Source of the DNA: Octopus bimaculoides
Taxonomy: Eukaryota
Length of the DNA stretch: 64,000 nt
Reading direction: 5' to 3'
Assembly: GCF_001194135.2 (NCBI RefSeq)
Contig: NC_068982.1
Location: forward strand, 128,774,906-128,838,905
Part shown: positions 8,901 to 62,675 of the stretch, in pieces
Layout: each line of letters starts with the position of its first letter
How positions within the stretch are numbered: the stretch's first letter is position 1
The notes under the pieces: model-generated
The model's database searches: none
Seen by the model: only the letters and a program-made list of their open reading frames with translations
What the model was told of the DNA's origin: nothing
Position numbers and translations under genes: made by a program

Positions 8901-11900
8901 ATATATTGTAAAGGACTACTTCACACTTCGAGACAAACCCACATAGTTAGTTGAAGCATTGTAATATAACTTTGACTAGTGTATTTGATGTTGAGGTCTT
9001 ATACTTGTTATTTTTTTATATAATTAAAAAATGTCACAAATAAGAAGGAGATTACTGAAGAAAAAAGTTATAAGAAAGAAGGATTCGGTAAAAGTTTAAT
9101 CCTGAATCTGAGAGGTGTGTTGAAGTGAGAATAAGGAGAAATCATCCAGTCAGTTGTTTTAGCACAGATTAAATAACTTGGAAGTGGCATGTAAAAAGCA
9201 CTATTCGAGCATGGTCAATGCCAGTACTGCTTGACTGGCCCCCATGCCAATGGCATGTAAAAAGCACCACTACACTCTCGGAGTGGTTGGTGTTAGGAAG
9301 GGCATCCAGCTGTAGAAACCTTGCCAGATCAGACTGGAGCCTGGTGCAGCCTTTTGGCTTGCCAGTCCTCAATCAAACTGTCCAACTCATGCCAGCATGG
9401 AAAGCAGAGAAGAAGCTTGTGGAATGGAAACTTAGCATTCAGCAATAATTTAAACAAATATGGATTGTATAAGTGGGATATAGATTTTTATCTGTAATAA
9501 TAATTGATGAAGGAAACAGAAGATAGATTTTTATCTGAATATATATCATTTATGTGCACTTGTTTATGTATGTTTGAATACAGTGGACACATTAAATAAA
9601 AATAAGGAATATTCTAATGCACAGTGAATTTGTGCTTCATAAAGTGTTAACAGGAGCTGTTAGATACTAAGTTCTCTTTGTTTCGACAAATGCCAGAATT
9701 GGTCATGTAGAGAATATGAGGTTGAAGAAATTGTGATTCTTGTTGCTGTATGTTATTACTGTTGTACTGAATGAACTTGTAAATAATAAGAGTATAAGGG
9801 AGTTAGTGACAAAGGTGAGATATTTATGCAAGAACAATTCAATTCATAATTTTTGTTACCTTTAACAAGAATTTCAAAATCTGCAGCAGCTTTTCCAACT
9901 GAATTTTCAGCCACAATGGTGTATACTCCACCATCTTTAGTGTCTGCATTTTTAATAGTTACTCGAGAGAATTTTTCTGTTGTTTCGATATTAAGAGAGT
10001 AAGATGTTTCAATCTCTTTTTCATTCAACAACCATTTGATAGTGGGAGTTGGAATACCGGAAACATTAACTAAGATAACTATTGAAGATCCAACCTTGAA
10101 GTTTTGAGTACTTTGCAGACGGTTGTCATATTCAAGCTGTGGATGAGCTGTAAAATAAAGAAATTTTGTATAATAAATAAGAAAATAAGAAATATGATGC
10201 AGTAAAATAATTAAAATGATAATAATAATTTTTTCTGATTTAGGCATAAAGCCAGCAAATTTTAAGTGGAGGGATTTAGTCAAAACCATTGATTGCAGTA
10301 CTTATACTTTATTTTATCAAATCTGAAAGGACGAAAAGTAAAGTTGACCTAGGCAGAAATTGAATCCAGAACATAAAGAGCTGGAAGAAATATTGCAAGG
10401 TATTTTCTAACAATACTCTAACTATTCTATTTTTGTTTTACTACTGGTGAGTTACAGCACATATTGTTTGCAGAAAACATAAAAATGCCACTACTTTGCT
10501 TAAACATTATAAATGTAAAGACATGCTGAAACAGCATTCATAAACACACATACACTAGGCTTCTGCATAATTTCTGGTTACCAATTCCACTCATAAGGGA
10601 TTGATCAGCTATAGACTATAGCAGGAGACACTTGCTCAAGGTATCAAGCAGGACTAAGCCCCAAACCATTTAGCTGTGGATTCAATACAGTCAATATAAA
10701 TAAATTGTATATATGTATACAAATGTATACATTTCAGTCTTTGCTTTCTTTCTGTTTACATGTATACATGTATCTTCACTGAAACATATTATTTGTTACA
10801 TGATGTCAAAATTTGATCATGAAAACTGACCTCGTCACTGACAAGATTACACTACAACTATATTTCACCCATCATCCTCACATCTATTTTGGATATTTGC
10901 ACTTCAACGAAGTATAATGTATTTTATAAAATCATGGATTTACTTACTGTGAATGGTTAGTTTTCCTTTAGTCTCACATTTTCCAAGAGCATTAGAAAAT
11001 TTGCATGAATAGACAGCAGTATCAGATGGTTCGGTTTTATGAATAGTAAGAGTAGCAATACCATCTTCATAATTCATCTCATATTTAGAATTCTTTTTGA
11101 TGGCAGTATCACCTTTAAACCTGTTTAAAGAAAAATTAGTTTTAAATATTTATTAACACAAATGTTTGAAAAATTTTTATTTTTTATTTAAAATTATACC
11201 AAATAATTCTTCTAATATCTAAACAGAATATTTACCATTTTATTTCAGCCTTAGGTTCTCCAAGATCAACAGTACATTCTAATGAAGCATCATTTGGTGA
11301 AACAAATGTGACATCAGTCAAAGGTTCCAGAATTTTGGGTGGTTTTCCAACTGTAAACAAAAATTTACAAGGATTGAATTCATTAATTTGTGTGAATGCC
11401 TTATCTCTCCACACACACACACACACACATATATGCATATATATATATATATATATNNNNNNNNNNNNNNNNNNNNNNNNNNNNNNNNNNNNNNNNNNNN
11501 NNNNNNNNNNNNNNNNNNNNNNNNNNNNNNNNNATATATGTGTGTGTGTGTGTGTATGTATACACACACACACACACACACACACTCTCGTGTCCAGCCC
11601 ATCAAGGTAAGCAGCACTCCTCAGTATGTGTTGACTCTGACCATGGTGATCTATCCAACCCATGCCAGTATGGAAAGTGGATGTAAAACAATAATGATAA
11701 CGATATAAATACACACAGCATATATACAAACATGCTATTGGTGCTGGGAGCTAGCAACATAAAAAAAATATATTTCTATGGCAGCATCAAATGGTAAATA
11801 TCCTCAACATCTGTTTTTATCATTTGGAAAGATAATTGCCCAAGTCTCGAAGTAAGAAATATGTTACATTTCTTGGTGTTAGAGTATCTTTGCTCAATGA

Positions 11901-17900: not shown

Positions 17901-20900
17901 TCACCAGGAATCTTTTCAACGGTTTGATCTTCAAGTTCTTTGATGAATTTGACTTCACCCTCTGTAAAATAATGAAGAATTTGTTACAGACTTATCAGAT
18001 CTTGTTTACTTTGTTTATTTTGCAAAATTAGATTATGAGAAAATGCATCTCTAAGTTTATTGGGGTTATTTTTTATATGGTTTTATATGTGCATGATACA
18101 TACTTTATATGTGCAATACATATAAAATATGTATCATATATGTTTTATATATGTAATACATATTTCCAAATTCTTCTCCAACAAAATATGTATTCTATAA
18201 TTCAATTTACAAATAAAGTTAATGTAAAAATTAGGAGTACCAGGAAAGTGGAAAGGTACTAAATAGCAGTTTGTGGAAACTAATTAAACAATAATAAACC
18301 ACTAGATTGAAATAAAATATTACTTATCATAAAAATAGAAAAATTAATTATGATAGCATATTTATGTCCAATTTCTATATGTAATTATTTACTTATAGAT
18401 TCTTAATCATCCTCTAATAAAACAACAAATACACTATTAGGAATTTTGCATTAGAAACAACATAGAAAATTGTAAGAATGAATCAGCTAAGTTTAACAAT
18501 ACTAAATCAAAAAGAAGTCTCAATCTGTATTTTGAAATGCTTCAACTAAGAGGCATTCTATTTACTTGGCTATGATCTAACCCTTTTGCTATCAACCTGC
18601 CTTTGGTTCTATGACATAAAATTCTTGTTTCAAAATTAAATTATAATCTTCTGGTAGGATTTCATAGTTTATGATCCAAATACTAGCTTAATAATGATAA
18701 AGTTATTTTACTAAATTCTCCAGTATTTTCAAAATTAATTGAAACAAAGGCAGAATATTTCGACAGAAATATAACAATCAAAGGTGTTGTAGAAAAATCA
18801 AACCTAATTAATAAGTTACTGTGACTTACCTTTCACTTTTACAAAAGCTTTTGTGGATTTATTCATTATTTTGAATTCATAATTTGCTTCATCATCAAGC
18901 TGTGCTTTTTGCACAATTAAAGTATGTTTCTTTTCTTCAACTGTGAAGTTGAAATGCGAGTCCTTTTCAATAACTTTTCCTGCTTTCATCCAACAACCAG
19001 TCACATTTGGTTTGGATACCTCGCATACCAAGAGAATGTCATCATTTTCCATAACCTCTTGGTCTTTTAGAGGACTCAAAAATTCTAATGGCTCTTCTGG
19101 AAAATAAAATTGCAATTTATATTTAGAAAGTTTAATGGAAAGTTGTAGTTAATACTTAGTCTATATAGTAGGAATCTAATTTTAATGCTTAAAAATAAAA
19201 ATATAAATTAATAATTTTATTAAACTTATTCAAATATTTATCTTCAGACTAGAAAAAAAAGTCTAGTTGAATTAATAGAATCATAAAGATAATGAACTTG
19301 GTGATAAAATAAATGACAGTATGACAACAAAATAATTCTAAAGCATAATCAAAGTAATTAATAATATAAATCACTAGAAACATGCGTAATATTAAGTTTT
19401 AAGAACTAATGTAGTTCCTAAAGCAAGAGAGAGGGACAAAATTAGAGAGAAGAATGAGTGTGTGTGTGTATGAGGGAGACAGCAAGACAATGTTAGAGAG
19501 GGAAAAGAGTAGAGGGAAGAAGGAATGAGAGAAAAGAGTGAGAAAGGAAAAGACAGGGTAAAAGAGCAACAGAGAGAAAGACTAATTCTATAGATCAATG
19601 TAAGCATAATTCCTTACATTCAATTGATTATTTCATTCCTTTTATTTAGTGTCAAAATAATTATTGAGGAAGTTTATATAATTGAAGAATGGGAATCTCT
19701 AAATATATACCAGCATGCACATCTACCAGAATATTACTAAAACATTGATGATTTTATATTTCAGTCTTAGGATATTCGTGGGATCAGTTGTATTAATAAT
19801 ACACAAGTATATACATTTCCTTATTTTCATTATCTCATAAATTCCATGATTTATAATGAGGATAGCTACATGATAGTTATGAATACAGCTTCTAGAAATT
19901 AACCAAAATCAGATAACAAGAATAAATTTCAATTGACAGGACTAACAAAAATGAATTAAACAACAAATCAGAAATTAAAGAAAAAGAATTGCTGGTACAA
20001 TAACTGCTCTTCTTTACAGACATTTATACCAAACTACTCGGATCATACATTAGTCTATTATAGCATATTATATATTCTATTATATCAGAGTTTATTGATA
20101 TATTTTTATTTTAATACAATAATTATTTGAATTTAATGCTTTCTTGTGTTTTGAGGATTTGGAAGAAAACTTAAAGAAAATTCAGTTGAAAAACAAAGGA
20201 AACTACTTCTGTGTTTAGCGATGATAAAAAAAATCTTTCCTTGAAATATGCCAAATAGGGAACAACTGTGTGTGTGTATATATATATATATNNNNNNNNN
20301 NNNNNNNNNNNNNNNNNNNNNNNNNNNNNNNNNNNNNNNNNNNNNNNNNNNNNNNNNNNNNNNNNNNNNNNNNNNNNNNNNNNNNNNNNNNNNNNNNNNN
20401 NNNNNNNNNNNNNNNNNNNNNNNNNNNNNNNNNNNNNNNNNNNNNNNNNNNNNNNNNNNNNNNNNNNNNNNNNNNNNNNNNNNNNNNNNNNNNNNNNNNN
20501 NNNNNNNNNNNNNNNNNNNNNNNNNNNNNNNNNNNNNNNNNNNNNNNNNNNNNNNNNNNNNNNNNNNNNNNNNNNNNNNNNNNNNNNNNNNNNNNNNNNN
20601 NNNNNNNNNNNNNNNNNNNNNNNNNNNNNNNNNNNNNNNNNNNNNNNNNNNNNNNNNNNNNNNNNNNNNNNNNNNNNNNNNNNNNNNNNNNNNNNNNNNN
20701 NNNNNNNNNNNNNNNNNNNNNNNNNNNNNNNNNNNNNNNNNNNNNNNNNNNNNNNNNNNNNNNNNNNNNNNNNNNNNNNNNNNNNNNNNNNNNNNNNNNN
20801 NNNNNNNNNNNNNNNNNNNNNNNNNNNNNNNNNNNNNNNNNNNNNNNNNNNNNNNNNNNNNNNNNNNNNNNNNNNNNNNNNNNNNNNNNNNNNNNNNNNN

Positions 20901-23900
20901 NNNNNNNNNNNNNNNNNNNNNNNNNNNNNNNNNNNNNNNNNNNNNNNNNNNNNNNNNNNNNNNNNNNNNNNNNNNNNNNNNNNNNNNNNNNNNNNNNNNN
21001 NNNNNNNNNNNNNNNNNNNNNNNNNNNNNNNNNNNNNNNNNNNNNNNNNNNNNNNNNNNNNNNNNNNNNNNNNNNNNNNNNNNNNNNNNNNNNNNNNNNN
21101 NNNNNNNNNNNNNNNNNNNNNNNNNNNNNNNNNNNNNNNNNNNNNNNNNNNNNNNNNNNNNNNNNNNNNNNNNNNNNNNNNNNNNNNNNNNNNNNNNNNN
21201 NNNNNNNNNNNNNNNNNNNNNNNNNNNNNNNNNNNNNNNNNNNNNNNNAAGAATTTGTTAAATCTGAAACTAGTTCCTGTTTAATAATGCTTTTTTAGGT
21301 GATTTTAAATGTCTTGCCCACTCACGTTTTTGGTATGCTGCTATATTTCATGTTGAGAACAATTTAGGTCTTAATAGACACAAGATGTGATCTATTTCTA
21401 GCGCATTAATTGTCCACGTTAGTGGTCGACGTTATTTTTTGAAAAATGTACCTTAATCCCCTGAGATTGCAGATAATATTTCTGAATCTCTTTGATTCTT
21501 TAGATGTGCTGGCCTCCTGATAATTAATCGATATTAATTAATATATGACTAATTACCAGATTTTATAATTATATATCAGTAATATATATATATATATCAG
21601 TAATATATTTAATATATGCTATAGGTTCAAAATTATATTAATAATGGTGATTGACAAGAACACTTTTAGGTAATGATGAGATGAGTAAAGTTAAATATGT
21701 GTATTAACAGTTGTTGAAAATAATACAGTTTAGCTGTATACGTTTAGACAATAATTAAAGTAGTTTATCTTTCTCCTCCTAATTCACATGTAACTAATTA
21801 ACTATACAAATATGAAGAAAAGATATTTCATGAGATGGAATTATGAAACAATGCAATGTGATATTTAAATACAGTGTTAAAATGTTATCAAAATGCATGA
21901 AGGTTAGTATCTACATATTATTTCATTAATAAAGATACTTAATACTAATTATTTCTGAAATTCAAATACAAAACAGTGGAAGTTAATGTAAAAATAACAG
22001 AAAATAATACTTTTGTCAATCCATTGTAAGCCATGTTTGGCATCTTGATTACTGTTTTGGCCATATCCTGCTCTTTGGCCATATTCTGCACTTTGGCCAT
22101 ATTCTGCACTTTGGCCATATTCTGCACTTTGGCCATATCCTGCTCTTTGGCCATATTCTGCACTTTGGCCATATTCTGCACTTTGGCCAATGTAATGATC
22201 ATTAAATTGATCAATTTTAATGTCATGGCTAATATGTTGCTCAACTGCTTGTTTAGCTTTATTGTCAACTGGCCAGTCATCCCCTTGATCAAGTTTATTA
22301 GTATCTTTTAAACTATAGTCTCTTTCATTTGCTTTTCGTATTTTCCGATCTAATTTGTCGTCTAGATTTTCACCATCTCTTAAAATAGCTTTATTACCAG
22401 ATTCAAAATATTCTTTAGGTCTTCCTTCAGAACTCAAGTGATAACTAGCTTTGCTACCTTCTATTTGATAAAAATCAGATTCTGTAACATCATTAGCTTT
22501 ATGACAAATCCTAGTTTTATTTGATTTAAGTTTATGATCAACCTCATCTGAATCAATATTCAGCATTTCATTCTCTTCAGATCTTCTAACAAAATCACAA
22601 GGAGCATCAACATTTCTACTTGTATCTTTTGAGAGTTCTGACAGACCTGTTTGGTTGATGTCAAGATGGTCTTTTTTATTGTAACCTTTAGACATCTTTT
22701 GATCAACCAAATTAGTAACTTGATCAATTTCAGGGATGACCTTTTTGTCAACATCCTGATCAAAGTTCTGGTCAGTTGTGAGACTAATTTCTCTATCTGT
22801 AGCATTTGCAATTTCAGCCTCAGAACTGGCCTTTTGATCAGAGTCTTTCTTGACTTTGAATCTGATCTTTTGGTCAACTTCTCTACTAATTTTTTGTTGA
22901 GCCTCAAGATTAGACTCCAAGTCAGTGGATTTGCTTATTTGTTGATCAACGTGATAGCCACTATGATTTAGATCAAACTCATTGACATTATCTTTGCTAT
23001 GGCCTTTCCTTTGTTGAATATCATCTTTAACTGGATAGTCAATATTTTGGTGCCTATTATGGCCAACATCTTGACCATCTTCTGAAAAAATAACAATTGA
23101 TATTTGTGGCAAAGTGATTTGTATTTCTTTGTATGTTGCTGTGTTTAGAAAATAAAACTGGTAAGAAATAAACTAATGAAGCAATGATCAACAAAAAATA
23201 TGATTAGAGTTTAAATAATTTGAAGAAAACCAAATAAAATTATAATCCTCAATTGCAAGAGCGTGTGAGTGAAAGACATCTTTCATTATCTGTTACTGGT
23301 TTCAGTCAGTAAGCTGATACCATAACGGGGTACTAAAACCCTTGAAGAGTTTTAGTCAATCAAATTGACCTCAGTACTTGTTTTTTTTTTTTTTTTAAGT
23401 CTGGTATTTATTCTGTCAGTCTCCTTTTCTGAACCACTAATTTACAGGGATGTAAGTAAACCAACACTGGTTATCAAGAGGTGGGAAGGTCAAACACAGA
23501 CAGAAAACACTGATATACACACATACATATGTATGTATACATATATATGATGGGCTTCCATATAGTTTCTGTCTATAAAATTTCCACAGCATTGGTTGGC
23601 CTGGGGCTAAGGCAGAAGACAATTGCCCAAGGTGTTGTGCAATGAGACTGAAGTTGATACTATAAGACTGCAAAGCAAGCTTCCTATCACACAGCCATGC
23701 CTGTTGCACCTGATATCAAAGATATTGGATTTTTGCATTTGTTCAGCAAGGTTCTTGATACTCGTTACCCAACCAATGTAAATCTAAATTAAACTGCACA
23801 TAGTTTAATTTCAAAAATATTTAAAGAAAATTAAACTAATTAAATTGCTGATATTACAAATGTTATTCACAAATTATAACATTATTTTAAGGTGTGTTGA

Positions 23901-26900
23901 ATTAAAATCATTACATTTTTCTAAATGTAAAAATGACAAATAAATCTCATTTGAAAGCATTTATAACCTCAACATTAATTTTTAAAAAAACAAATTCAGC
24001 TTACAGTATATAACTATTTCTATACACCTTCCTTTTCTGAACTAATCAACTAGTGTTAAGAAAGCCAATCTGACCATAGTAGCATGAATTGTTAAAATAG
24101 TGGTGCTGGTACTGATGATGATGGTGGTGGTAATGACAGTGGTGGTGATGGTGGTGATGAAGGTAGTAAAGATGATAGTAGTGAAGTGACTGGTTGATTC
24201 ATAACAATAATATTAATGTCAATGATGAGAAAGAAACAGTTTTCATAATGTTTATCTGTTATGAAACAATACACAACAAAATATTTTCAATGAAAGAATT
24301 TTCTTTGCAATCTTACTACTAACAATTATCAAAACTGTGCTGTAAGCCAAAAATACATAATATAAAGCGAAATAATCAATACACAATAAAAAAAAGAATG
24401 AATAATTTGTTTAGATATGTAACAAGTTAGGTAACAAAAATAATATAAATATGAATAACCTACCATCAACCGTTAGAATTGCAGAGCTTTTTACACCATC
24501 CACCACAATAGTATACTCCCCTTCATCATCAAGTTCAGAGGGTTCAATGATCATTCTGTGAACACAACCATCCACAACAAGTTCAACTCGTTCACTACCA
24601 CTAAAGATTTCTTTTTCAAACTTCCAAACTGCCTTTTTATTTGGTTTGTTAATTTCACATTCCATGACAGCTTTCTCTTTCTCCATAATTTTGATATCTT
24701 TAAGTGGTTTCAGGAACTGAACTGGTTCTTCTGCAAAATTTTTAAAAGAACTCACTATTATCAAAGAACAAATTTTATTTTTAAAAACTTCACTTTTTAA
24801 AAAAATATATATTGAGAAATGTTAGGAAAATGTATAATAGAGCCAACAACAACTAATAAAACAAAATAAACCATGTCAAAATAAGAATAATATTTGAATG
24901 ATTAAAGACAAACTTGATTTCTGATAATTAGTGTTACCCATAACATAATACTTCATTTTGATGCACAAATATAGATAAATTGTAACCTATTTGTAATATA
25001 ATTTCATATTGCACAATCATGGACCACTAGAACAAAAATGTACTTATTGATTTTTTCTGGGTATTGTTTATGGAAGAGGCTATGAGATAGTTATATGAGA
25101 AATTTGAAAATAAAAATAGTGTAACAGCAGTCATTGGATGAACTAAGCGATTGACTGTTCAGAACAATATGGTTAGTGTAGAAGAATAAGGTGATGTATG
25201 CTAGCTTAAGATGTTAATGTATTATGTATATTGTACATTCATAACACATACAAACACACAGACATTCATACAAATATCCTATAGATATAAATATTACAAA
25301 AAAAATAGTTTCTTATTAAATATTAGCAATATTTTGATATCTTCTAATATTTAAGAAGCTAGGAAAATATTTGCAATTTTAGATCAAATGAAATTACCAT
25401 CCACAAAGAGAGTGGCTGTAGTCTCCACATCCCCAATACAACAAGAATAATCAGCTTCATCCATTAGAGCTGCTTCAGTAAAAATAATTTGGCGAGTAGA
25501 ACCATCAGAGACAAATTTGATTTTGTCACTAGGTTTAATCTCTTTGCCATCTTTTTTCCATATAATGGTGGCATTTGGTTTTGTAACCTGGCACTCTAAT
25601 ATAGCTTCTTGTTTTTCAGTCACATGAACATCATTCAACGGTTTCTTGAATGCAGCAGGAAGTTCTAAAAATAAGAAAAGCATCAAATTGTAAAAGTTGC
25701 AAACATTGAAACTACTGAGAATGATTATTTCAGGCAGAAATAGATGTCTTAATTGCAGGACAAGATATGATAGAATCATAACTGATGGTTTACTATACAT
25801 GATGAATGATAAATGATAGTTTTAACCTGAGTTACTCGTTGGTTTCAGATGTTTATTAAGATAACATCGTTCTAAACTTTATTCTTCAGAGTAAATATAT
25901 TAATGCAACTACATGAATGTTAAGACTATGATTGCTTTAAGAACTTATATATAAATTTTATATATATATATATTTTATAAGGAAAACTATTCAACTTTCA
26001 CCTAACATAAGCAATAAAAATTATTTGTATTTCCTTCTAACTCAATGCTATTAGCTTTCAGAGAAATTATTATTATATCATGTTTGCGTTAAAATATTCC
26101 ATACAACAAATCCCTTTAAATAATAGAGATGGTTTTAAATATTAGGGCTTTTGTTATATTTTAACACTTATGAAATTGCATATTAAACGTAATCTATAGA
26201 ACAATTTTTCACATAGTTTTTAATGTTTTCAACTTCTAAAATCATCATTAAATAATACAATTAATAGTACCTTCAATAGTCAAGGTAGCTTTAGTTGAAA
26301 CATCCCCACAAACACAGGTATATTCTGCTTTGTCATCTAGTGTGGTATCATGTATTATAAGCTTCTGTTGGAAACCATCAGTGATAATTTCAAAATGATC
26401 ACTCGGTGTGATTTCTTTTCCATTCTTCAACCATTTAACAGTTGCATTTTCCTTTGTTAATTCGCATTTCAAGGTAGCAGTTTGCTTTTCTTTCACAGTT
26501 ACATCCTTCAGATTTGTTTTAAATGTTGCTGGAAGTTCTGCAAAAAAATAATATTTTTTAATGAATAGAGAAAAATTATGCTTATTTTAAAATAAGAATA
26601 TTAAAATGCATCTACAAGAAAGAAATACAAATAAGATTAAGGCATCATTATATGGTATGTTCAAAAGAAAATGAATGTTGAGGTACAAAAAATTTAATTA
26701 TATAATGTAAAAAATGTACTTCAATATTAAAAGAATTCAATTATCAAATTTTTATCATAGCTATCTAAATTTACCTATGACTGTCAATTTAGCAGACACT
26801 TCATTTCCATTTGGTAAGACACATGTATATTCTTCTTGATCATCCATAACAGCATCTGTAATAGTTAATTTCTGGATGCACTTGTCTGTAGACATAGTAA

Positions 26901-35387: not shown

Positions 35388-38229
35388 TGTGTGTGTGAGT
35401 GTGTGTGTATATAATATATATGTGGAGGGGCAATATGGCCCAGTGGTTAGGGCAGCAGACTAATGGTCATAGGACTGTGGTTTCAATTCCCAGGCCGGTT
35501 ATTGTGAGTGTTTATTGAGTGAGAATACCTAAATCTCTCACTCTTTCTTCCTGTTTCTGCTGTACCTATATTTCAAAGGGCCAGACTTGTCACACTCTAT
35601 TTCACGCTGAATCTCCCCAAGAACTACATTAAGGGTACACATGTCTGTGGAGTGCTCAGCCACTTACATGTTAATTTCACAAGCAGGCCGTTCTGTTGAT
35701 CTGTTCAACTGGAACTCCCGTCATCGTAACCAATGGAGTGGCACATATATATATACTCACACACACAAACATTTTTGTTTATCAAATCTATGAATAAGCA
35801 AATACATATAATGAGCACTTATCTTTTGTTTGTGTACCCATACATGAACACAAACACAGACATACAAATACACACACAGATTCCCAAACTCACATCATAC
35901 AAATGTGTGTGTGTGTGTATGTGTGTTCAAAGTCATATTACAGTTTAGTTCAAACTATATTACAGTGAATGACCCAATTCTTTGGATAAGACATATTTCT
36001 ACAGCAGAGTAGCTGGCTATAAAAAATGAATACAATCGAAAAATATATATTTCAAAATCTCATGTATCTACACCTGCTTTAAAATATGATTATATATTAA
36101 GTCAACTTGAATTGAGAAAGATAAGTAATTTAAATATCTCTACTTACGTTCTACGGACAATTTGGCTTCAGTCTTAATACTGCCATAGGCGCAAGACACA
36201 GCACCTTCATCTTTTGGACGGCATTTGGAAATAACCATAGTATGAACTTTTCCATTAGCTTTGAAGTTATATTTAGGACTAGCCTCAATTTCTTCATCAT
36301 GTATTTTCCAAGACACAATTACATCAGCAACAAATAGTTCGCATTCGAATGTTGCGCATTCTCGTTCTTTTACTTCCACATTTTCTAATGGTCTCACCCA
36401 TTTCCACTGAATTTGAAATAAATATGTAAATGCAATCACAATGTTTGATAAGAATATCAATTTCAATCATCACACCAATAAATTATAATAATACATAATA
36501 AAAGATTGAACAATTTTTACACTTATGTTACTCATCTATCTAACATTATTTTCTTCCAAATAGAATTAATTTATAATCAAACATTTTTTTCTACACCTTC
36601 AAACCTTTATAGCATTATTCATTACTTTATAAGAAACATGGTTTTCATAATTTATGGAAAATCTCCCAGAGGAAATAAGTAAAACGTGTATGAATTTGAT
36701 GAAGTTCTTGTATGTTTTAGATATTTTACATTTATGATAATGGTAAGAAAGTTTCAAATATTGCTAATATTTTTGATGTTTCCACTAAAAAATTCTCAAT
36801 TACTCTTTCTAACAAATTTATCATTTTTCTCACCGTTTTCTTGACAGTCTTGAAACCACCCTCTTCTATGGTAGCAGCATCTTTTTCTTTTGGTTTCTTT
36901 GCATATTTGTCTTCAGGTTTCTTTTTATCTTTCTCTTTTTCATCCTTTCCAGGTTTCTTATCTACTTTAGCTAACTCAATGTCTTCACGTTTTTCAATAT
37001 CATATGTTTTGTCTTTGAATTCATCCAACTAAAAACAAAAATACATAAACATAATGAAAATAAAAGCGTAAAAACATGTATTTAAAATTTAAATCTTAAA
37101 ATTAAAATGTAAAAACCTTAATCATAATATTAACATCTTGTTATTATAAACAAAAAATAACATCCAGAAACTAAATAATCATTTCAATATTAATTTCAAA
37201 GATAATATTTTAATGGGCTTAATGATATTTTATACTTTGATATCACCTTGATATTATAAAATTTAACTATGTATGTAGTATTAAATATGCTTCATTTATA
37301 TACTGATTTTTAGAGTTAGCACATCTAACAAAAAATATAAATAGACATCCTTCAATAAATAAAATACAATCTTCACTCAGTAAGATATATAAAAATTCTA
37401 CTTACTTCAGGCATATCTCTCTTCTTTAGATCATATGTTACTTCATCTGCTTCAATTTCCATAGTACGTTTGGTGGTATCAGTTTTAGTCAGCTCTTGTT
37501 CTTCCAGTTCAACCTTACGAAGGTTAATATCAAAGCCAGCATCTTCTTCAATTTCTCGTTCTTCTTGCTCCCTACATAAAACAGGTTTTAATATTATAAA
37601 TTTTTATGAAATATTTATTCTCTATGCTAGTTAGTTTCTATGATCATCAAACTTAATTCTATAAATGTTTTTCTCAGATTCAGTAATAAATTTTGAATTT
37701 TTAATGATTATGTAAATAAATAAATAAATATGTGTGTGTGTGTGTGTGTGTGTGTTAAATGAAATAAGATAACAAAGCCAAGGCCATGTGGAATTTTTAG
37801 GACATTCATAAAGAGAAAGTTAGTCTTACAGCTGTTTCTGGGATATTAGGGATATCCCTTTATCAGAGATGATATGAGAGAGTTAAATAGAGGGAAATAG
37901 TAGAGTTCAATATAAGGAATTATTTTGGTAAAAGATAGATATAGGAAGTATAAAGGGAAATAAGAGAATAAAAGTAAAAATATATGTAGGATGTTACAGT
38001 TGCAATTCCATTGTCCAAGGAAAGTGCTGTATAGAAAGTGCTGTGTAAAATTCCACACAGCCTTGATTTTGTTGTCTCATTTTATTTAGCATATACATGC
38101 TCACACAAGACCCACATTAAGCTCCTCATTCGTATTACTATCAAACCAAGAGTCTAACTACGGTCCTTCCGTAGCACTTACATAGCCTTACCTGCCATCT
38201 TGGGTCTTCTGGATACCAATACCTCTTAT

Positions 38230-38313
<84 letters not shown>

Positions 38314-41300
38314 ATAAATAGATAGATAGATAGATAAATACATGTATGTATATATGCATATAGATGCATGTATGTGTGTGGGGGCATGTGTGTAAATGTA
38401 CATGCACAGAGCAGTTCTATTTCCTATTATGAAAGAAAAACCATACAAAGAAATAAATATTTACAGCTTCAATAATTTTACCTGTGTTTTAAGCCGGCCT
38501 TCCAATCTGTTTCCTCCTCTTCCTTGTCTGTTACAATAAGAGTTGCTGGTGCAGATTCTGTTCCATGCTCATTGGTTAATGTTACAGTGTAAGTACCTGC
38601 ATCTCCAGTTTTGGTTTTTTCCATCTTCATAACCTCTTCTCCTGTTTTTTCATCATAATAGATTTTAATACGTCCACCATCTTGAAGTTTCATCCATTTT
38701 CCTTTAGACCACTCAATTGTTGGTTTAGGTTCACCAGCAATCTTGCAACGGAATTCTGTGGTACCATCTTAAATTAAGAAATTTATAGAATATAAAATAT
38801 ACATGTAATTCTAAAGTAGAAACAGTTGTAATAAATTTGAATTTATGAGAATAAATATTTGCCTTTTCTTCGTTTTAATCAATAAATTTATTTCAAATAC
38901 AAATAAGGTTTCTCTTTACTAATATGTAAACAGTTGTCTAACTTCTCTACAACAAGAAACATGTTCTTCCCTGATCCTTTCTTTCATACTTTTACCTCTT
39001 ATCTGCAAGCATATGGGTTTATTGTCTTGCAAAATGCATGATGACCTCACTAGGTTTGGTTGCATGAAAGAAGCACCCAGTGTACATTGTGAAATAGTTG
39101 GCATTAGGAAGGCATCCAGCCATAGAAACCATGCCAAAGAAGACACTGTTCTTGAGCCCATCAAATCCTGTCAAACTGTTCAACCCTTCCCAGCATGAAA
39201 CATTGATATTAAATGATGTTAATAATGATTACCTTCCAAAATTGTACATTTCTGAGGTACTTCAATGAACTCTGGTGCTCTGCCTCTAATATCAATCTTG
39301 GCTTCAGCAGAAGCATCTCCTCCTCTATTGGTTGCAACAGCTTTCAGTTTTCCTTTCAATTCAGGGCTAGCTTTATCAATGGTAAGAGTATATTCATCTT
39401 TCTTTGGAGAATCAAAATGAATAATGTCACTTTCTTTGAGTTCCATATCATTGATGTACCTAAAGATAACATAATTATACATTAGTACCATAAAAAATAA
39501 ATGAATAAATGAAGAGAATGCTTTTATTTAAAAATATATTTTCATGCAAAACTTGATAACAAATACATTTATATAAATTCTAAAATGGTTAGAAATATTT
39601 TCAAATATATTATATACTAACCAAGTAACAGTAGGCGATGGTTGTCCACTGACTTTACATTCAAATGTAACTGAACCATTTTCAGGTACCAATTTATCAA
39701 CTGGTTTCTTGACAAAGGATGGCTTCTTAACAGCTGTTAATATAAATTTATTATATAGAAATAATTGACAAAATTATACTAAAGTAATGTATACTTTTTC
39801 AAAACTAAATCACAGCCAAAAGAGCAACTATATATGCAGAAAAGAAACAGTTATACAGAATACAATGTATTGTAAAAGTAAACCATAATCTGAACATATA
39901 TTCAGATATTTATTTAATGATTCAATAATCTTTTAAACTGAATGTCTTTTAGTTACTATTGTTTTTGATAAACTATTGTTTTGGTGTTAAAGTTAAGTTT
40001 TTCCTCAAACCTAAAATAATTTGAATTTGAAAAATATGCCAACTCCACAAATTAAGCAAGATATGTTCAGATATTCTCTTCTTTATTCACATTATCTTTA
40101 TTCATTAGGCAACATGTTAAGTTTTGTATTACTTGATACAAGGAAATCTTCCAAAATATTATAAAATCAAAAAACAAAATCTTACGGATAACTTTCAAAC
40201 GGCCATTACAAGCCATTTGACCAGCAGAATTTACAGCTCGAGCAGTAAACAGTCCGGCATCATCTGTAGAAACATACTTAAATTGCAATGTATGCTTATC
40301 ATCTTCAACCAAAAACTTTATGTTGTCATCTTCAGTCAATTCTTTATTGCCTTTGAGCCTTTAATGTAAGAAAACATCATAAATATTAAAATTTTACATT
40401 AAGCCAATGAAAATAAAATTTTAATTTGACATTTAGATAATAATTATTATTTTAAATTTCTAATTACAAATAAATTGTTTATTTGTTGAATGATAATATG
40501 TACCTGTAATACATTCTAATGGCAACTAAAATGTACAAAATTCTTCAGGAAGTAGAAAGGAAAAATTATAAAGTTAATTCTAACTCGGAATACACTGCCT
40601 CTGTTTCAATTAATTTTGAAAATAAGGAAACATTTAGCAAAATATTTTTGGCGTTATTAAGCAGGTGTCTGGGATCCAAATTAACATAAAATTTTGATGC
40701 AATATTTTAACTTAGATCACTTTAAAACAGGAAGTTTGTATCATATAACAGTCAGTCTCAGGTGGATTTAGTTATCAAGGGGGTTAAAGTGTTATTTAAA
40801 TATTGATTTCTAAAATTAGAACAAGTCTACAAATTTGGAGGAGATACAAGCAACTAAAACAACCCTAGCATTTAACTGGAACTCTTGCATTTGAATATTA
40901 AAACAGAAACATGTTATGCCAATTGATATCTGTAGCATGAACAATATAATTCATCAGCAATAAGGATTTCTAACTTTGGCATTAAGTTACAAATTCTGAG
41001 TTAGTGATGAAGCCATTGTAATCAACTTCAATGGTGGGAGAGAGAAAGGCAATGTGGATTGCAAAAGAATGTGAACTTGGAATATAAAAGGATTAGAATC
41101 ACATCGTCAAGGCATATAAAACTGGTGACATACTGGTCTTGTCTCTCCACTACAAATTTTATGTTTTACTTGTTTCAGTCATTAGACGGTAGCCATGCTG
41201 GGGCACTACCTTGAATGGTTTTAGTCAACCAAATCAACTGCAGTACTTATGCTTTTTTAAAGTCTCGTACTTATTCTATTAATTTCCTTAGCTGAACTTC

Positions 41301-44300
41301 TAAGTTATAGGAACAGAGACAAACCAACATCGGTTGCTAAGCAAGAAGGCAGGGACAAACACAGGCACAAAGGTACATAAAGTTTTCATCTACCAAATTC
41401 ACTCACAAAGCACTGGTTGCCCCAGGACTATAGTAGAAGACCCTTGCCCACATAGTTTCAGTGCAAGGCAAGCTTCTAAACCACACAGCCACGCTGGTAC
41501 TTATGATCAAATTATATATGCATCAATTTCATTTAGATTAAATTATATATATTAAGTAAAGAGACCAGAGATGAAGAAAAAAAGAGAAACATAAAGTAAA
41601 CACATGGTTTTCTATTTTTGCCTCTTCTTTTTAAATATTATATCTTAATTATATAACCATTATATAAATATGCAATAATCAAAGCAAAAGGAATAATATT
41701 TACTACTAACCAGACAACATTAGGCTTAGGTTTGCCGCTTACAATAACTTCCATGCTGAAAGTTTCTAATTCATCAATTTCATAATTTTCAAGCTTTTTG
41801 ATAAACTTGGGTGTTTCTTTCTTTTCTGAAATGTCCAAAAGAAAAGAATCTATTGAAAAAAAGTCTTACCTAGTCTATAAAAAAGTAAAGAATTATCAAA
41901 TATCGCTTTGAAAAATAAATTTCTAGGCAACTTGTATCATCAGCCTTATCATCATCATCATTATTATCATCATAAACATTGTCAATATCATTGCTATCAC
42001 AACCATCATTGTTATCATCGTTATCTTTGTTTTAATGTCCATAGTTTTGCTTGAGTCAGAATTAATTTACTGAAGTAGACTCTCTACAGCTGGGTGCTCT
42101 TCCTGTCACCAACCCTCACTTGTTTCCAAGCAAGGTAATATTTCTTTATGACAAGACATGTTTCCATGGAAGATTGGAAATGAATGATCCATTTGTATGA
42201 TGGTGACACTCATTCACAACTATCATGTGATGTCAAGATAAGGAGATACAAACACACATGCACAGAGTTTCTATCTACCAAATCCATTCACAAGGCTTTG
42301 GTTGACCTGAAGTGATAACAAAACGCTCTTGCTTGTGGTGCTACACATTGAAATGGAACACAAAGCAACATGATTAAGAACTGAACTTCCTAATCATGCA
42401 CAGTCGTACCTGCACCTATACAGCTATACTTGTATGTCAGAATTAAGTTTATCTGCCATTAATTCATAAATATCAAAAACAAAATATAGAGGTTTTATTT
42501 TGTTTCACTTTTGCATAGAACTAGATTTAGTTACCTTCTACAATAAATTCTCCTTCAGTTTCTGCTTCACCAGCAATATTTTTGGCAACAGCTTTAATAA
42601 TGCCTGCATCTTCAAGTTCAACTGCATCAATCCTTAGTGTATGCTGAATGTCTGAGAAAGCTTTTTTAGTTTCAAGTTTGAACCTTTCATTAGATTCAAT
42701 AAGCTTTTGATTTATATACCAGGTAACCTCAGGCAAAGGTATACCTTTAACACCAACATCGACGGAAAATGGCCGCCCTTCCCTGCAGTCTTTCTTTGTG
42801 AGTTTCCTTGTAAAAACTGGTGCCTCTGTTTTTTCTAGAAGAAATAAAAAAGACAACAATTAACATTATTAAAGGAATTCTTATGAAAATATGAAGTTCA
42901 AAAACAAACATGATTTGCAAGCATTATAATATACTATGGTAAAATATTTTGATTAAATTTCTTATAATTTGACTTATTACTCAAAAAATAATTACCTTCA
43001 ACAGTAACTGTGCATGTACATTCTGCAGTTCCAACAGCATTTGTGGCAACACATTTATATGTTCCACTTTGATCTTTCTTTGTTTTGGGAAGTTTTATAA
43101 TGCAAGTAGTGCCATCTTGAGATATTTTGATGTCAGCAGTTGATGTAATTGGTTTATCATCCCTAAATAACAAATTTAAATATGGTTAGTATTTATAATG
43201 AAGCCATTTATGTGTTCAGTTACACTCATCAAAATTCTTTAACTCTAGTCCATGGAAAGGCTGGTGTTTCTTTCTCTTATATCATTACTATCACTGTAAT
43301 CTGTTGCTTCTAAAATCTATTCTTTGAGTATTTCTTCTAATAAGATGGTAAATTTTCCATCAAATTGAGATTCTAAAGATAGAAGGCTCACTTATTAAGT
43401 AGGCCTAGTGAATACATATAACTTTTATAATGTATTTTAAAAAGATAGTTCCTATTTTTAAAATAATAAAAAAAATAGTAGCTATTTATGAAATACTTAC
43501 TTAAACCATTTGATTGTGGGTTTCGGATCACCAGTTACTTTACATTTTATTTCAAAAGGTTGATCTTCCATAATTTTCTAAAATGAAATGACAGTATATA
43601 TATGTAAAAACTCTTCAAATTTAAACATTATAAAGAATATCTAAATCCCAAAGCAATAAATAACAGTGGAGTTTAAAAAATGAAAAATGGCTTACAATTA
43701 ATGTAAATGACATTTTATCTTCTGATGTAGTACAAAAATGAAATATATAATAATTCCTTGGGTATACATTACAATTATAGATTTCAAAGTTTTAGGTATT
43801 TTTGTGTCAGGTACACTTTGATATTATTGTATTCTATGTATTTCTATATTCTCATATACTAGGAATATATTTATTGCCTGTTGTGATATACATGTAGAAA
43901 TACTGTTTTATTTGTTCATTATATAATAAAAGAACTTTGAATTGTGAAAAGATGAGATGGGACTGCAGCTATCATAGGATAATAGCAACCTCACTACTAT
44001 TTAATACTATATTTGTGTGCACCATTGCAGCAGAGCCTGTTGTTTACAACTTGGGTTTAGCTACAACAAAATCTCATCCACACCAAAATTACACCCCTTT
44101 GATTTATTATTTCACAAATCGGACATCAATTGTGAAATCGAACTTTCTAAACAAATCAAAGATCAATTGTGCAATTGAACTTTCTGAACAAACTTGATTA
44201 TCTAAGAATGTAATATGTTCCAGTTGTATTTATTTATAATTTAATTAAGAATATGTATGTGATTTAATCAATTTTCACAGACTACATTTACTACTATTAA

Positions 44301-47300
44301 TATTTAATGATATCAGCTTCAATATCGAAATCAAATGGAAATTGTAGCTGTGAACCCCGTGCCAGTGGCATGTAAAAAGCACCATCCAAACGTGGCCAAT
44401 ACCAGTTCCTCTGGCCCCTGTGTCTGTGGCACATAAAAAGCACCCACTACACTCTCGGAGTGGTTGGCATTAGGAAGGGCATCCAGCTGTAGAAACACTG
44501 CCAGATCAGATTGGGGCCTGGTGCAGCCTCCTGGCTTTCCAGACCCCAGTCAAACCATCCAACCCATGCCAGCATGGAAAATTGACGTTAAACAATGATG
44601 CTGATGCTGATAATGATGATGTAAAAGCTTAATAACCATTCTAATAATAAAGTTGCTTGATTTTTCATAGTATTAATGTTTGAAGCCTTTTAATTTTACT
44701 ATTCCTCATTGTCACTAAAGAACAGAGCTAAATTTATTCAAATCGGTTGCCACTTGTATAAAAAATACAAATTTCAGAAATAATGTAATATCAAATATTG
44801 ATACTCATGAAGCAATTATAATGAATGGATGTTTTTTCACTTACTTTCAAAATCTACATAGCAATGATATTCTCATTGCTCATGTAGTAAATGAAATTAA
44901 AGTGAAATTTATTAATCTATAACTGAATGCTTCCTTTATATTCTGATGTGTTATTTCATATAATATGATAGGATGATTAAGAGAAAAAGATTTCCAAAAC
45001 AAACAAAAATATATCTTACAGTAGATTCTGTGACATCTTCAAACTTAGGTGGAATTTTAGCTTTTTCAACTGGTTCCTTCTTCTCATCTTTTGGTTTTTC
45101 TAAAATAATGATATGATACAGATATTATTATCATTATTAAATGATAATAAAGTTTCACGATTTGTCATAGTTTGAATCACTTTAATTCTAATGCATATTT
45201 TTAAATCTCAGAATTAAGTTTTAAGCAAATTTTCACTTACATTTGAAATATGAAAAACCAAATTGAATTTACTTTTATCATACAACACATGAATCTATAA
45301 CTTATTAAACAACAATATATTCTATAGGATTTAAAAAGAGAAATTAAACTAGTAGATGTTATGGGGAAACATAATTGTCATCATTGTCATAACCATTGCA
45401 AAAAATTAAAAATAATAAACTTTTGAGAGTTAATGTTTGTTCTCCATCTTTTATATAATTGGTATATTACTAATTTTTATTATTCTTATTTACTCTACTA
45501 ATCAAAATGATAAATGTATGCTAAGGATATCCCAAATACTGTTTATCAACTTACTACTAATTTATTATCTCAGTCTTTTGTTAATTTATTTATTTATTTT
45601 ACTGAAGGTTAGTGTTATTTTACAATTAAAGGCAAGTTTCTACAATAACTTTGAAATTATTGGATTCATCCCTAATTTACATCAAAGAATTCTTTATACC
45701 TGTCTTTCAACTTGTTATTTGTTATCTTTCACTAACCAAAACATTCAATGCACTGCTATGATTCAGCACATTTTTTTCGCAGTTTTTTTTCTATTCATTC
45801 ATTTCCATCAACTTTTAATATGAGGAGTGAAAGGTTAATAATCACAATGGTTATGATTTCAATAATTCTACTCTAGATCATGAAGTAAATAACTATAAAA
45901 CTTAGATAAATAGGAAGAGAAGAAAAATGTTTTGTCAAAGATAGATTTGTATATCATGGGTATTGTTCTCATCTCCCTATGATATAGACAGTTATCTGAA
46001 TTTCCCCCTAAAAAGATAACCATTAATTTCCTTGGACTGAGGTGTTTATTTTTATTTAAAGAACACTATTCATGCTCAAAACTCCTCAGGCATATGAATT
46101 TCTAGGAATCTGAAAACTAAAAGCTTATTGTCTTTGTTAAATAGACAACTGAATAAAATACCAATAAAGTTGTTATTGTTTTTTAAACGCAACTTTAATT
46201 TTGGAAATAATATAACATCATCCCTTTAGTAATAATCCTACACTACATGTACTATGCATAAGATCTCTAAAGTTATTATGCAATGTAAGTATGTTCTAGA
46301 CTTTGATAGTATTGGTAATTTTGAATCTTTGTTTACTCAAATATCGTCATAGAACACATTTCTAAACCATTTAAAATGCAAAAAGTGATTCTGAAAGGGA
46401 ACAGATCATTATTAACAACAATTTTGACAAGATTAAGATTTGAGGGATTTCTACTGACCTTCAAGTGAAACGGTGGCTTCACATTCTGCAGAACCAGCAG
46501 GATTTGTGGCAACACATTTGTAAACACCAACTTCATTCTTGGAGAATTTGCTGGTTTTTAGTACACATACAGGGCCATCTTGTGTGAGCTTGGTAAGTGA
46601 TGTTGGTTTAATTTCTTTGTTGTCTTTAAACCACTTAATAGTAGGTTTTGGTTCACCAGTTACCTTGCATTTCAGTTCCAAAACGTCATTAGGTTTAAGG
46701 GATACTGATTGGAAGATCTCTTCAAATTCTGGTTTCTTTTGCTCTGGCTTCTTTTCTTTTGGTTTTTCTTCCTCAAGTGTTATAGTAGCTTCACACTCAG
46801 CAGATCCAGCAGGGTTTGTAGCAACACATTTGTAAACACCAACATCATTCTTTGTGCATTTACTGGTTTTTAATATGCACACTTGGCCGTCTTGAGTAAG
46901 TTTGGTAATAGATGTTGGCTTAATTTCTTTGTTATCTTTAAACCACTTGATGGTAGGTTTCGGTTCACCAGTTACCTTACATTTCAATTCCAAAATGTCG
47001 TTCACCTTGATGGTTGTTGAACTGAAGATCTCTTCAAATACAGGTTTCTTCTGCTCTGGTTTCTTTTCTTCTGGTTTCTTTTCCTCTGGTTTCTTTTCTG
47101 CTGGTTTTTCTTCTTCAAGTGAAACAGGAGCTTCACATTCAGCAGATCCAGCAGGGTTTGTTGCAACACATTTGTAAAGACCAATATCTGTCTTTGAAAT
47201 CTTTGGTATTTTCAGAGTGCACTGTTGCCCATCTTGAGTTATAACACTCTTAGATGTGTTTCTTATTTCTTTGCCATCCCTGATTATGAAACAAATAAAA

Positions 47301-62495: not shown

Positions 62496-62542
62496 AAAAG
62501 AGACAGTGAAAGAGGAAGAGAAAGAGGGAGTAGAGAGGACAA

Positions 62543-62675
62543 AGGAGAAGACTGGAGAGAAGAAGGAGAAGACTGGAGAGAAGAAGGAGAAGACTGGAGA
62601 GAAGAAGGAGAAGACTGGAGAGAAGAAGGAGAAGACTGGAGAGAAGAAGGAGAAGACTGGAGAGAAGAAGGAGGA
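62543..62675. repeat. Perfect 21-bp minisatellite, 6 copies
   Basis: Unit gactggagagaagaaggagaa starting at 62550, 62571, 62592, 62613, 62634, 62655. Confidence 0.95.

Follow-up and report, generated by a model that had tools for sequence, protein, structure and literature searches.

Giant sarcomeric proteins set muscle stiffness and architecture largely by way of optional unique-sequence exons and truncated isoforms, and to our knowledge almost everything that is known about such optional exons comes from vertebrates and flies. Here, we analyze a 1.1-kb unique-sequence frame located within a tandem array of immunoglobulin (Ig) domain exons on the minus strand of a 64-kb stretch of Octopus bimaculoides DNA (contig NC_068982.1; hereafter the window), in what is, judging from its sequence, a giant titin/connectin-like muscle gene. 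Among the closest described systems, the novex-3 exon of vertebrate titin (TTN exon 48) carries its own stop codon and poly(A) signal and gives rise to a short isoform without the thick-filament part (PMC13649281), and the N2B unique sequence (TTN exon 49) is a disordered sequence of several hundred residues among the I-band Ig domains (PMC8553726). In Drosophila, kettin is a short, I-band-only isoform of sallimus (sls) that is produced by alternative termination (PMC11081514), and a parallel between kettin and novex-3 has been drawn (PMC13649281). Whether the bilaterian two-gene titin arrangement originated by fission or by fusion is debated (PMC12198301).

The octopus frame shares features with each of these systems. 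Like novex-3, it would be an optional exon in a tandem-Ig region with its own stop, combining an acceptor and a stop with no competent donor; unlike novex-3, which exceeds 2000 amino acids (aa), is located close to the Z-disc end, and comprises six Ig domains as well as a defined polyadenylation signal, it encodes about 375 aa without any Ig domain, has no demonstrable poly(A) signal, and is positioned three Ig domains before the first fibronectin type III (FN3) domain. By analogy with kettin, a terminal exon at this place would result in an I-band-only product of a protostome titin-like gene; however, the sls gene is without the A-band FN3 part (projectin is separate), whereas in the octopus, FN3 super-repeats follow in the same orientation, and there is no homology between kettin and the octopus unique peptide. 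As with N2B, the encoded peptide is predicted to be disordered, is several hundred residues long, and is embedded among I-band Ig domains. In contrast, N2B is internal and spliced on both sides, whereas the donor proposed for the octopus exon fails the test described below and the peptide is proline-poor and, in the predicted model, partly helix-prone. No homology of the peptide to the vertebrate N2B unique sequence or to novex-3 was found in searches covering 5.8 billion proteins, 1.84 billion proteins, and the PDB, and the likeness to both appears to be one of gene logic only, not homology.

Our favored reading, to which we assign a probability of roughly 0.4, is that the unique exon is terminal rather than a cassette, i.e., novex-3/kettin-like in logic only. 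Transcripts would be spliced from the upstream Ig exon (e38) into the unique exon via a very strong phase-1 acceptor at 23081, those entering there would read through ∼20 intron-like codons to the TAA at 21949, and cleavage would take place somewhere downstream of the stop, perhaps within an assembly gap. The short product would keep the Ig/PEVK-like elastic part and be without the FN3/Ig thick-filament part, and skipping of the unique exon would join e38 to the downstream Ig exon (e40) in frame and yield the full-length protein. The features that define the frame and its entry are the following:

21949..23172, minus strand: whole stop-free frame plus TAA (407 codons, 23172..21952; TAA at 21951-21949).
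22011..23081, minus strand: unique-sequence exon (e39) as delimited in the original prediction, which was made from the letters of the sequence without database searches (1071 nucleotides [nt], phase 1 to phase 1).
23082..23104, minus strand: 3′ splice site, T-rich tract plus CAG (caattgttattttttcag).

The open frame clearly exceeds chance expectation: over 2000 dinucleotide-preserving shuffles, the longest open frame among all six frames had a mean length of 83 codons and a maximum of 191, compared with the 407 codons observed. Stop codons in the three sense frames of the exon number 0, 9, and 75 (∼26.5 are expected per frame), a distribution that amounts to strong three-base periodicity. At codon positions 1 and 3, base composition agrees with that of the Ig/FN3 exons of the gene (G1 0.36 versus 0.34, T1 0.13 versus 0.16, T3 0.44 versus 0.40; intron G is 0.12), and at position 2 it deviates because the amino-acid content is hydrophilic. 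With a codon model trained on 2069 codons from the gene's other exons versus its introns, the exon has a log-likelihood of +0.31 bits per codon in frame and of -0.24 and -1.45 in the other frames; equal-length intron windows give -0.85±0.19 and known exons 0.36-0.75, which places the open reading frame (ORF) about 6 standard deviations above the intron null. Both upstream of 23081 (-0.35) and past 22011 (-0.72), the signal becomes intron-like. It starts near the acceptor, with the boundary resolved to about 23145-23081, and ends as a plateau between about 22056 and 22011, so that the 3′ coding boundary is resolved to only about ±15 codons. Synonymous codon usage was rejected as a discriminator, with r=0.85 to known exons and r=0.87 to intron trinucleotides. 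Within the exon, an in-frame ATG first occurs at codon 129, and 31 further open codons precede the acceptor. The stop-free 1.1-kb frame of the original prediction is thus real and its coordinates are all correct. As a candidate exon the frame is well supported, as is the conclusion that it is, or very recently was, translated sequence of the titin-like gene; that it represents a real coding exon of this gene we consider quite probable.

The predicted acceptor for entry into the frame, ...ttgttattttttcag/AAGATGG (a slash marks the intron/exon boundary), makes 23081 the first base of the exon and is in phase 1, the phase common to all neighboring Ig exons. When scored with a position weight matrix (PWM) built from 30 acceptors of this gene, curated from domain exons, it reaches 12.8 bits, equal to the best of the 30 and within the top 0.3% of the window's 3369 AG dinucleotides, in full agreement with the strong in-frame phase-1 acceptor originally described. 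Beyond the splice consensus, the intron/exon boundary of the ORF has no similarity to those of the neighboring Ig exons.

The exit from the exon is a different matter, and here the following features come into play:

22009..22010, minus strand: GT originally proposed as donor (AAA/GTATTA; exon end 22011, -0.5 bits).
22051..22052, minus strand: alternative in-phase donor GT (ACA/GTAATC; exon end 22053, exon of 1029 nt, 3.4 bits).
21952..22010, minus strand: read-through tail, ∼20 codons followed by TAA, T-rich and of intron-like composition.
21608..21613, minus strand: ATTAAA hexamer, 336 nt past the stop; a second copy is at 21280-21285.
20292..21248, no strand: assembly gap of 957 N between the unique ORF and e40, starting 700 nt past the stop.

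Donors were scored with a PWM derived from 36 donors of this gene, whose leave-one-out scores have a median of 7.5 bits (range 2.9-12.2). The GT at 22011 falls below all 36 (minimum 2.9), and 52% of the window's 3186 GT dinucleotides score at least as high; statistically, it is indistinguishable from a random GT. The original prediction had described it as a weak donor that closes an in-frame, N2B-like cassette: the in-frame arithmetic (357 codons from 23081 to 22011, counting both split codons) is correct, but "weak" was an understatement, and a cassette that uses this donor is not supported by the comparison with the curated range. Around the end of the coding signal, the in-phase GT with the highest score is the one at 22053, which lies within the plateau where that signal ends and at the bottom of the true-donor range. 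Stronger in-phase GTs are found inside the ORF (6.5 bits at 22398, 5.3 at 22686, and 5.0 at both 22458 and 22374); GTs of at least 3.4 bits occur by chance at a rate of 7.3 per kb, and the ORF has 8 of them, with ∼7.8 expected. No GT between 22053 and 21558 exceeds 3 bits; going downstream, a strong GT is first encountered at 21557.

With no competent 5′ splice site at the end of the coding signal, use as an alternative last exon is the likeliest role of this sequence. It has its own in-frame stop after a normal acceptor with no GT above 3.4 bits from 22053 to 21558, and this pairing of the gene's strongest acceptor with donors that do not outscore a random GT is the architecture of an alternative last exon. 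As originally noted, read-through past 22011 adds ∼20 codons before the TAA at 21951-21949. This tail has an intron-like codon log-likelihood (-0.72 per codon), and an open run of 20 codons has a probability of about 0.2 by chance, as estimated from the stop-codon frequency in introns. We also observed that, immediately ahead of the stop, the T-rich tail (22010-21955) closes with a site that resembles a good acceptor and scores 7.5 bits, ttaac...tttgaatttcag/AAATAA; past it, each of the three frames runs into a stop within 9 codons, so there is no coding exon there. A 56-nt mini-intron (GTATTA...tttcag, 22010-21955) was likewise considered and dropped, since a Lys codon and the stop follow immediately.

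A number of points weigh against a terminal exon. In known titins, as exemplified by human TTN, internal unique exons are commoner than terminal ones, and the probability given above reflects the last-exon anatomy weighed against this higher base rate. Coding-like composition ends ∼20 codons before the stop, near an in-phase GT, as it would in a spliced internal exon (given the uncertainty of ±15 codons in this boundary). It should also be noted that the donor set was curated by eye from Ig/FN3 exons and so may under-represent weak donors. From the stop to the N-gap at 21248, the 700 nt of sense strand contain no AATAAA, and the two ATTAAA hexamers in this interval compare with ∼1.9 expected from composition, i.e., they are at chance frequency. 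The absence of AATAAA and the ATTAAA at 21613 had both been reported in the original prediction, and we add the copy at 21285; its suggestion of a novex-3-like terminal exon is compatible with the acceptor, the stop, and the lack of a competent donor, and the poly(A) hexamers are present only at the level expected by chance. Sense-strand AATAAA has a density of 1.8 per kb window-wide, with five copies within the ORF itself, and in such AT-rich DNA the hexamers weigh neither for nor against a poly(A) site. Finally, an orthologue of the exon was not found in two cephalopod relatives, for each of which one of the two flanking exons is available on contigs that stop short of the ORF, which makes this absence uninformative. 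The first, a close relative, is represented by a short genomic Logan contig with e38 only (84% identity over the whole contig, exon and introns); the second, more distant, by a short genomic Logan contig with e40 only (78% exon identity).

The encoded sequence has a predicted length of about 345-375 residues and, as proposed originally, is D/Q/K/N/S-rich and probably disordered. Two segments of it can be singled out:

22798..22926, minus strand: helix-prone segment, residues 52-94 in a single-sequence AlphaFold2 model.
22056..22189, minus strand: in-frame 18-nt tandem repeat, 7.4 copies, 94% identity (Tandem Repeats Finder).

With D at 12.4%, K 9.6%, S 8.7%, Q 8.4%, E 7.3%, N 6.7%, V 4.5%, and P 1.4%, the peptide has a net charge of -20 and a fraction of charged residues (FCR) of 0.34, and its mean hydropathy of 0.355 is below the Uversky boundary of 0.433 (domain exons average 0.449). 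AlphaFold2 run without an alignment returns a mean predicted local distance difference test score (pLDDT) of 46; the only confident element is the helix at residues 52-94 (mean pLDDT of 69-91 for 10-residue blocks over residues 51-90), and weaker helices are predicted at residues 106-130, 239-260, and 273-282. On these predictions, the peptide would be acidic, polar, proline-poor, and mostly disordered. A PEVK-type spring was considered and rejected, given the low P (1.4%) and V (4.5%) contents and the D/K/S/Q/E/N-rich composition found instead. The 18-nt repeat encodes (YGQSAE)x7 at the C-terminal end, and no other internal repeats were found in the ORF. A φ-D-Q/K/N/H motif (mostly φ-D-Q, where φ = V/I/L) recurs 11 times in the peptide; its DNA counterpart, the palindrome TTGATCAA, has five of its seven sites in the window inside the ORF (22207-22949). 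If used as a cassette, the sequence including the split codons would read ...TVD-E-DGQDVG...LQWIDK-K-EPLEF...

In line with the original observation that the frame has no Ig or FN3 signature, Pfam finds neither in the peptide and in fact returns nothing at E<=0.01, with only a spurious 15.6-bit AAA_lid match at E<=10. A word-indexed search of 5.8 billion proteins gave two matches only, unrelated low-complexity repeat proteins of the YGQ type, both confined to the YGQSAE repeat, and a HMMER search with the 296 non-repeat residues against 1.84 billion cluster representatives gave 0 matches at E<=0.001. There were likewise 0 matches in a PDB search and in a JGI metagenome scan with the peptide, no record in exact-product look-ups of the ATG-start and TTG-start ORFs, and no second copy of the ORF in the window. 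This absence of detectable homologues fits the idea, put forward originally, that the element has evolved independently. Derivation of the ORF from an Ig exon was rejected, as the ORF does not resemble the Ig domains that the clam has at the equivalent site (E 0.59).

To place the frame in its gene, we list its two neighbors:

24464..24730, minus strand: upstream Ig exon e38, I-set, titin I-band type (267 nt, phase 1-1, donor ATG/GTAGGT).
18830..19096, minus strand: downstream Ig exon e40 (267 nt, phase 1-1, Pfam I-set E 4e-14).

The tandem-Ig setting is as originally described, with titin-type Ig domains on both sides: e38 is identified by Pfam as I-set (E 4e-9) and has titin I-band Ig domains as its best PDB matches (7ahs, E 3.5e-24), and when the unique exon is skipped, e38 joined to e40 stays in frame. 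The minus strand of the AT-rich window (G+C about 30%) encodes ∼45 exons, all from one giant muscle-protein gene. Going from high to low coordinates, the gene starts with Ig domains linked by EEKPxxKKPE, followed by two E/K-rich unique exons (37.6-36.8 kb), eight one-domain Ig exons of 237-279 nt each (36.4-24.5 kb), the unique ORF, the 957-N gap, three Ig exons, and FN3-FN3-FN3-Ig repeats to coordinate 194. Arrays of I-set Ig and FN3 domains, one-domain phase 1-1 exons, and a PEVK-like segment are thus all present; in a window of 64 kb, the C-terminal kinase and the Z-disc N-terminus of the host gene would fall outside.

The window is, moreover, collinear with a 3379-aa predicted titin-like protein from the clam Tegillarca granosa (KUTeg_001478, P0009; an unverified gene-model prediction), which was found by protein search with 16 other exons and the ORF's alternative frames. 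Collinearity covers the N-terminal Ig domains, the PEVK-like segment, and the Ig array and extends into the FN3 domains, with 36-60% identity per domain. The titin matches in the PDB and the collinearity with the clam protein together argue for a titin/connectin-like host gene, and the clam model supports, at the sequence level, a single transcription unit across the site of the unique ORF. It should be noted that the link between the ORF and the FN3-bearing part of the gene depends on the scaffold join across the 957-N gap, which is large enough to conceal a poly(A) site or one Ig exon.

The same comparison bears on the age of the exon. The domain orthologous to e38 is found at residues 2526-2614 of the clam protein (55% identity), and between it and the orthologue of the exon at 17961 the clam has three Ig domains and no unique sequence (residues 2526-2968), whereas the same interval in the window (24464-17692) has the unique ORF, the gap, and one Ig domain. 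Hence, the two are collinear in their Ig/PEVK-like/FN3 order and differ in that the clam is without unique sequence after the e38 orthologue, suggesting that the exon is not an old molluscan feature, insofar as an unverified clam prediction can tell. Most likely, the exon is lineage-specific. In the clam, the array that precedes the e38 orthologue has about twice as many Ig domains, including three near-identical copies.

How do other explanations of the frame fare? An in-frame alternative cassette, N2B-like in logic and joined to e40 through a weak donor (at 22053, at 22011, or at an internal in-phase GT such as 22398), is possible but doubtful. It would insert a disordered linker or entropic spring of 228-357 residues between two Ig domains, and it has the arithmetic on its side, the exon length to 22011 or 22053 being a multiple of 3 and the phase fitting e40. 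The coding-like signal, moreover, ends at the 22056-22011 plateau and not at the stop, the peptide is predicted to be disordered and is highly charged (FCR 0.34), weak donors are typical of regulated cassette exons, and among the unique exons of titins, internal ones are the more common. Yet the donor at 22011 (-0.5 bits) is at the level of a random GT and that at 22053 (3.4 bits) is at the bottom of the true range; GTs of at least 3.4 bits inside the ORF are at chance density (8 versus about 7.8 expected), and an internal donor as the sole exit would leave 100-plus open codons unexplained. The pairing of the gene's strongest acceptor with its weakest donor would also be unusual, and a proline content of 1.4% and AlphaFold2 helices of 10-43 residues make the peptide unlike PEVK. 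The lack of a functional-looking donor is equally what one would see if the exon were decaying or rarely used, i.e., a former cassette with a mutated donor or a young exonized sequence, with a frame that is still open, little or no share of the proteome, and a use that gives read-through transcripts or targets for nonsense-mediated decay. No homologue was found anywhere in the protein database searches, at the corresponding place the orthologous clam model consists of Ig domains, with no unique sequence, and the 94%-identical 18-nt array indicates recent turnover, all of which is as expected for such an exon. We nevertheless regard this as improbable, since an open frame of 357 codons in ∼65% A+T DNA, with ∼26 stops expected per frame, decays fast unless selected, and here the codon-position composition is still fully exon-like and the acceptor is the best in the gene.

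Two explanations remain. Were an I-band-only gene of the sallimus/I-connectin type to end constitutively with the ORF as its last exon, the FN3-bearing part past the gap would be a separate twitchin/projectin-type gene, an arrangement that would account for the exon's own stop and absent donor and that has a precedent in arthropods and nematodes, where I-band and A-band functions are on separate genes (PMC12198301); in addition, the assembly gap lies across the link to e40. However, e40 and the next Ig exon share the Ig subtype of e38, have phase-1 acceptors, and lack a start codon, only about 2.9 kb including the gap would be available for a promoter and first exons, and the clam model continues straight through the equivalent point, making a gene boundary very improbable. 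As for a foreign ORF in an intron, be it a piece of a transposon, a retrogene, or a same-strand, independent nested gene, the intron is repeat-rich, with a copy of a repeat resembling a short interspersed element (SINE) at 23278-23703, 200 nt upstream. Against this, the ORF has no mobile-element Pfam domain, the search of 1.84 billion representatives returned zero homologues, and the window contains a single copy, and a transposon, retrogene, or nested gene is therefore unlikely; the match to a transposon or retrogene that the original prediction had allowed for did not turn up in Pfam, in the homologue searches, or in the copy search. Further, the first ATG at codon 129 would leave 128 exon codons and the 31 open codons upstream of the acceptor unexplained, and the coding signal starts upstream of the ATG, near the acceptor at 23081 (boundary about 23145-23081). 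Taken together, a foreign origin strikes us as scarcely probable at all.

As an optional exon, the octopus sequence would join a known class, the optional unique-sequence exons of giant sarcomeric proteins, as an example without homologues, and an orphan exon validated at the I-band/A-band junction of a cephalopod gene would provide a handle on sarcomere tuning in muscular hydrostats. If the exon is terminal, it would bear on whether fission of one titin-like gene gave rise to the sallimus-type and projectin-type genes of protostomes, and the split in products would mirror the division of labor that arthropods and nematodes get from two genes. In its boldest form, the locus is a candidate for a protostome titin-like gene that has retained both its elastic I-band and its FN3 A-band part and in which a lineage-specific terminal exon, placed where the two parts meet, releases a sallimus/kettin-like I-band-only protein, and hence for a living intermediate in "one gene split into two," a proposal that we regard as rather unlikely.

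Other features of the window were noted in passing. Copies of the SINE-like interspersed repeat are present in introns at 23278-23703, 54136-54532, and 41159-41371 (65-70% identity), with no match to tRNAs or to Rfam; the first of these ends 200 nt upstream of the acceptor of the unique exon and does not overlap the ORF. No non-coding RNA or tRNA was found in the window. There is a second assembly gap:

11457-11533: assembly gap of 77 N.

The two E/K-rich unique exons (37406-37563 and 36834-37028) lie between Ig domains and, by eye, match the position of an E/K-rich PEVK-like stretch in the clam and Elysia titin-like proteins, although mapping by tblastn gave no match for either. Given this positional counterpart, the gene seems to own an older unique/elastic segment, unlike the orphan ORF. 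Farther upstream, two long multi-Ig exons stem from recent tandem duplications of an Ig-plus-EEKPxxKKPE-linker module:

56478-57557: multi-Ig exon, one of the two duplications (period 297 nt, 3.6 copies, 89% identity).
46476-47086: multi-Ig exon, the other duplication (period 312 nt, 2 copies, 83% identity).

These look like a PEVK-like/Ig spring segment that is expanding by unit duplication. Finally, a perfect 21-nt tandem array (62542-62673; 6.3 copies, 100% identity) is located upstream of the mapped Ig exons, within a low-complexity S/L/E-rich region that is open in several frames on both strands.

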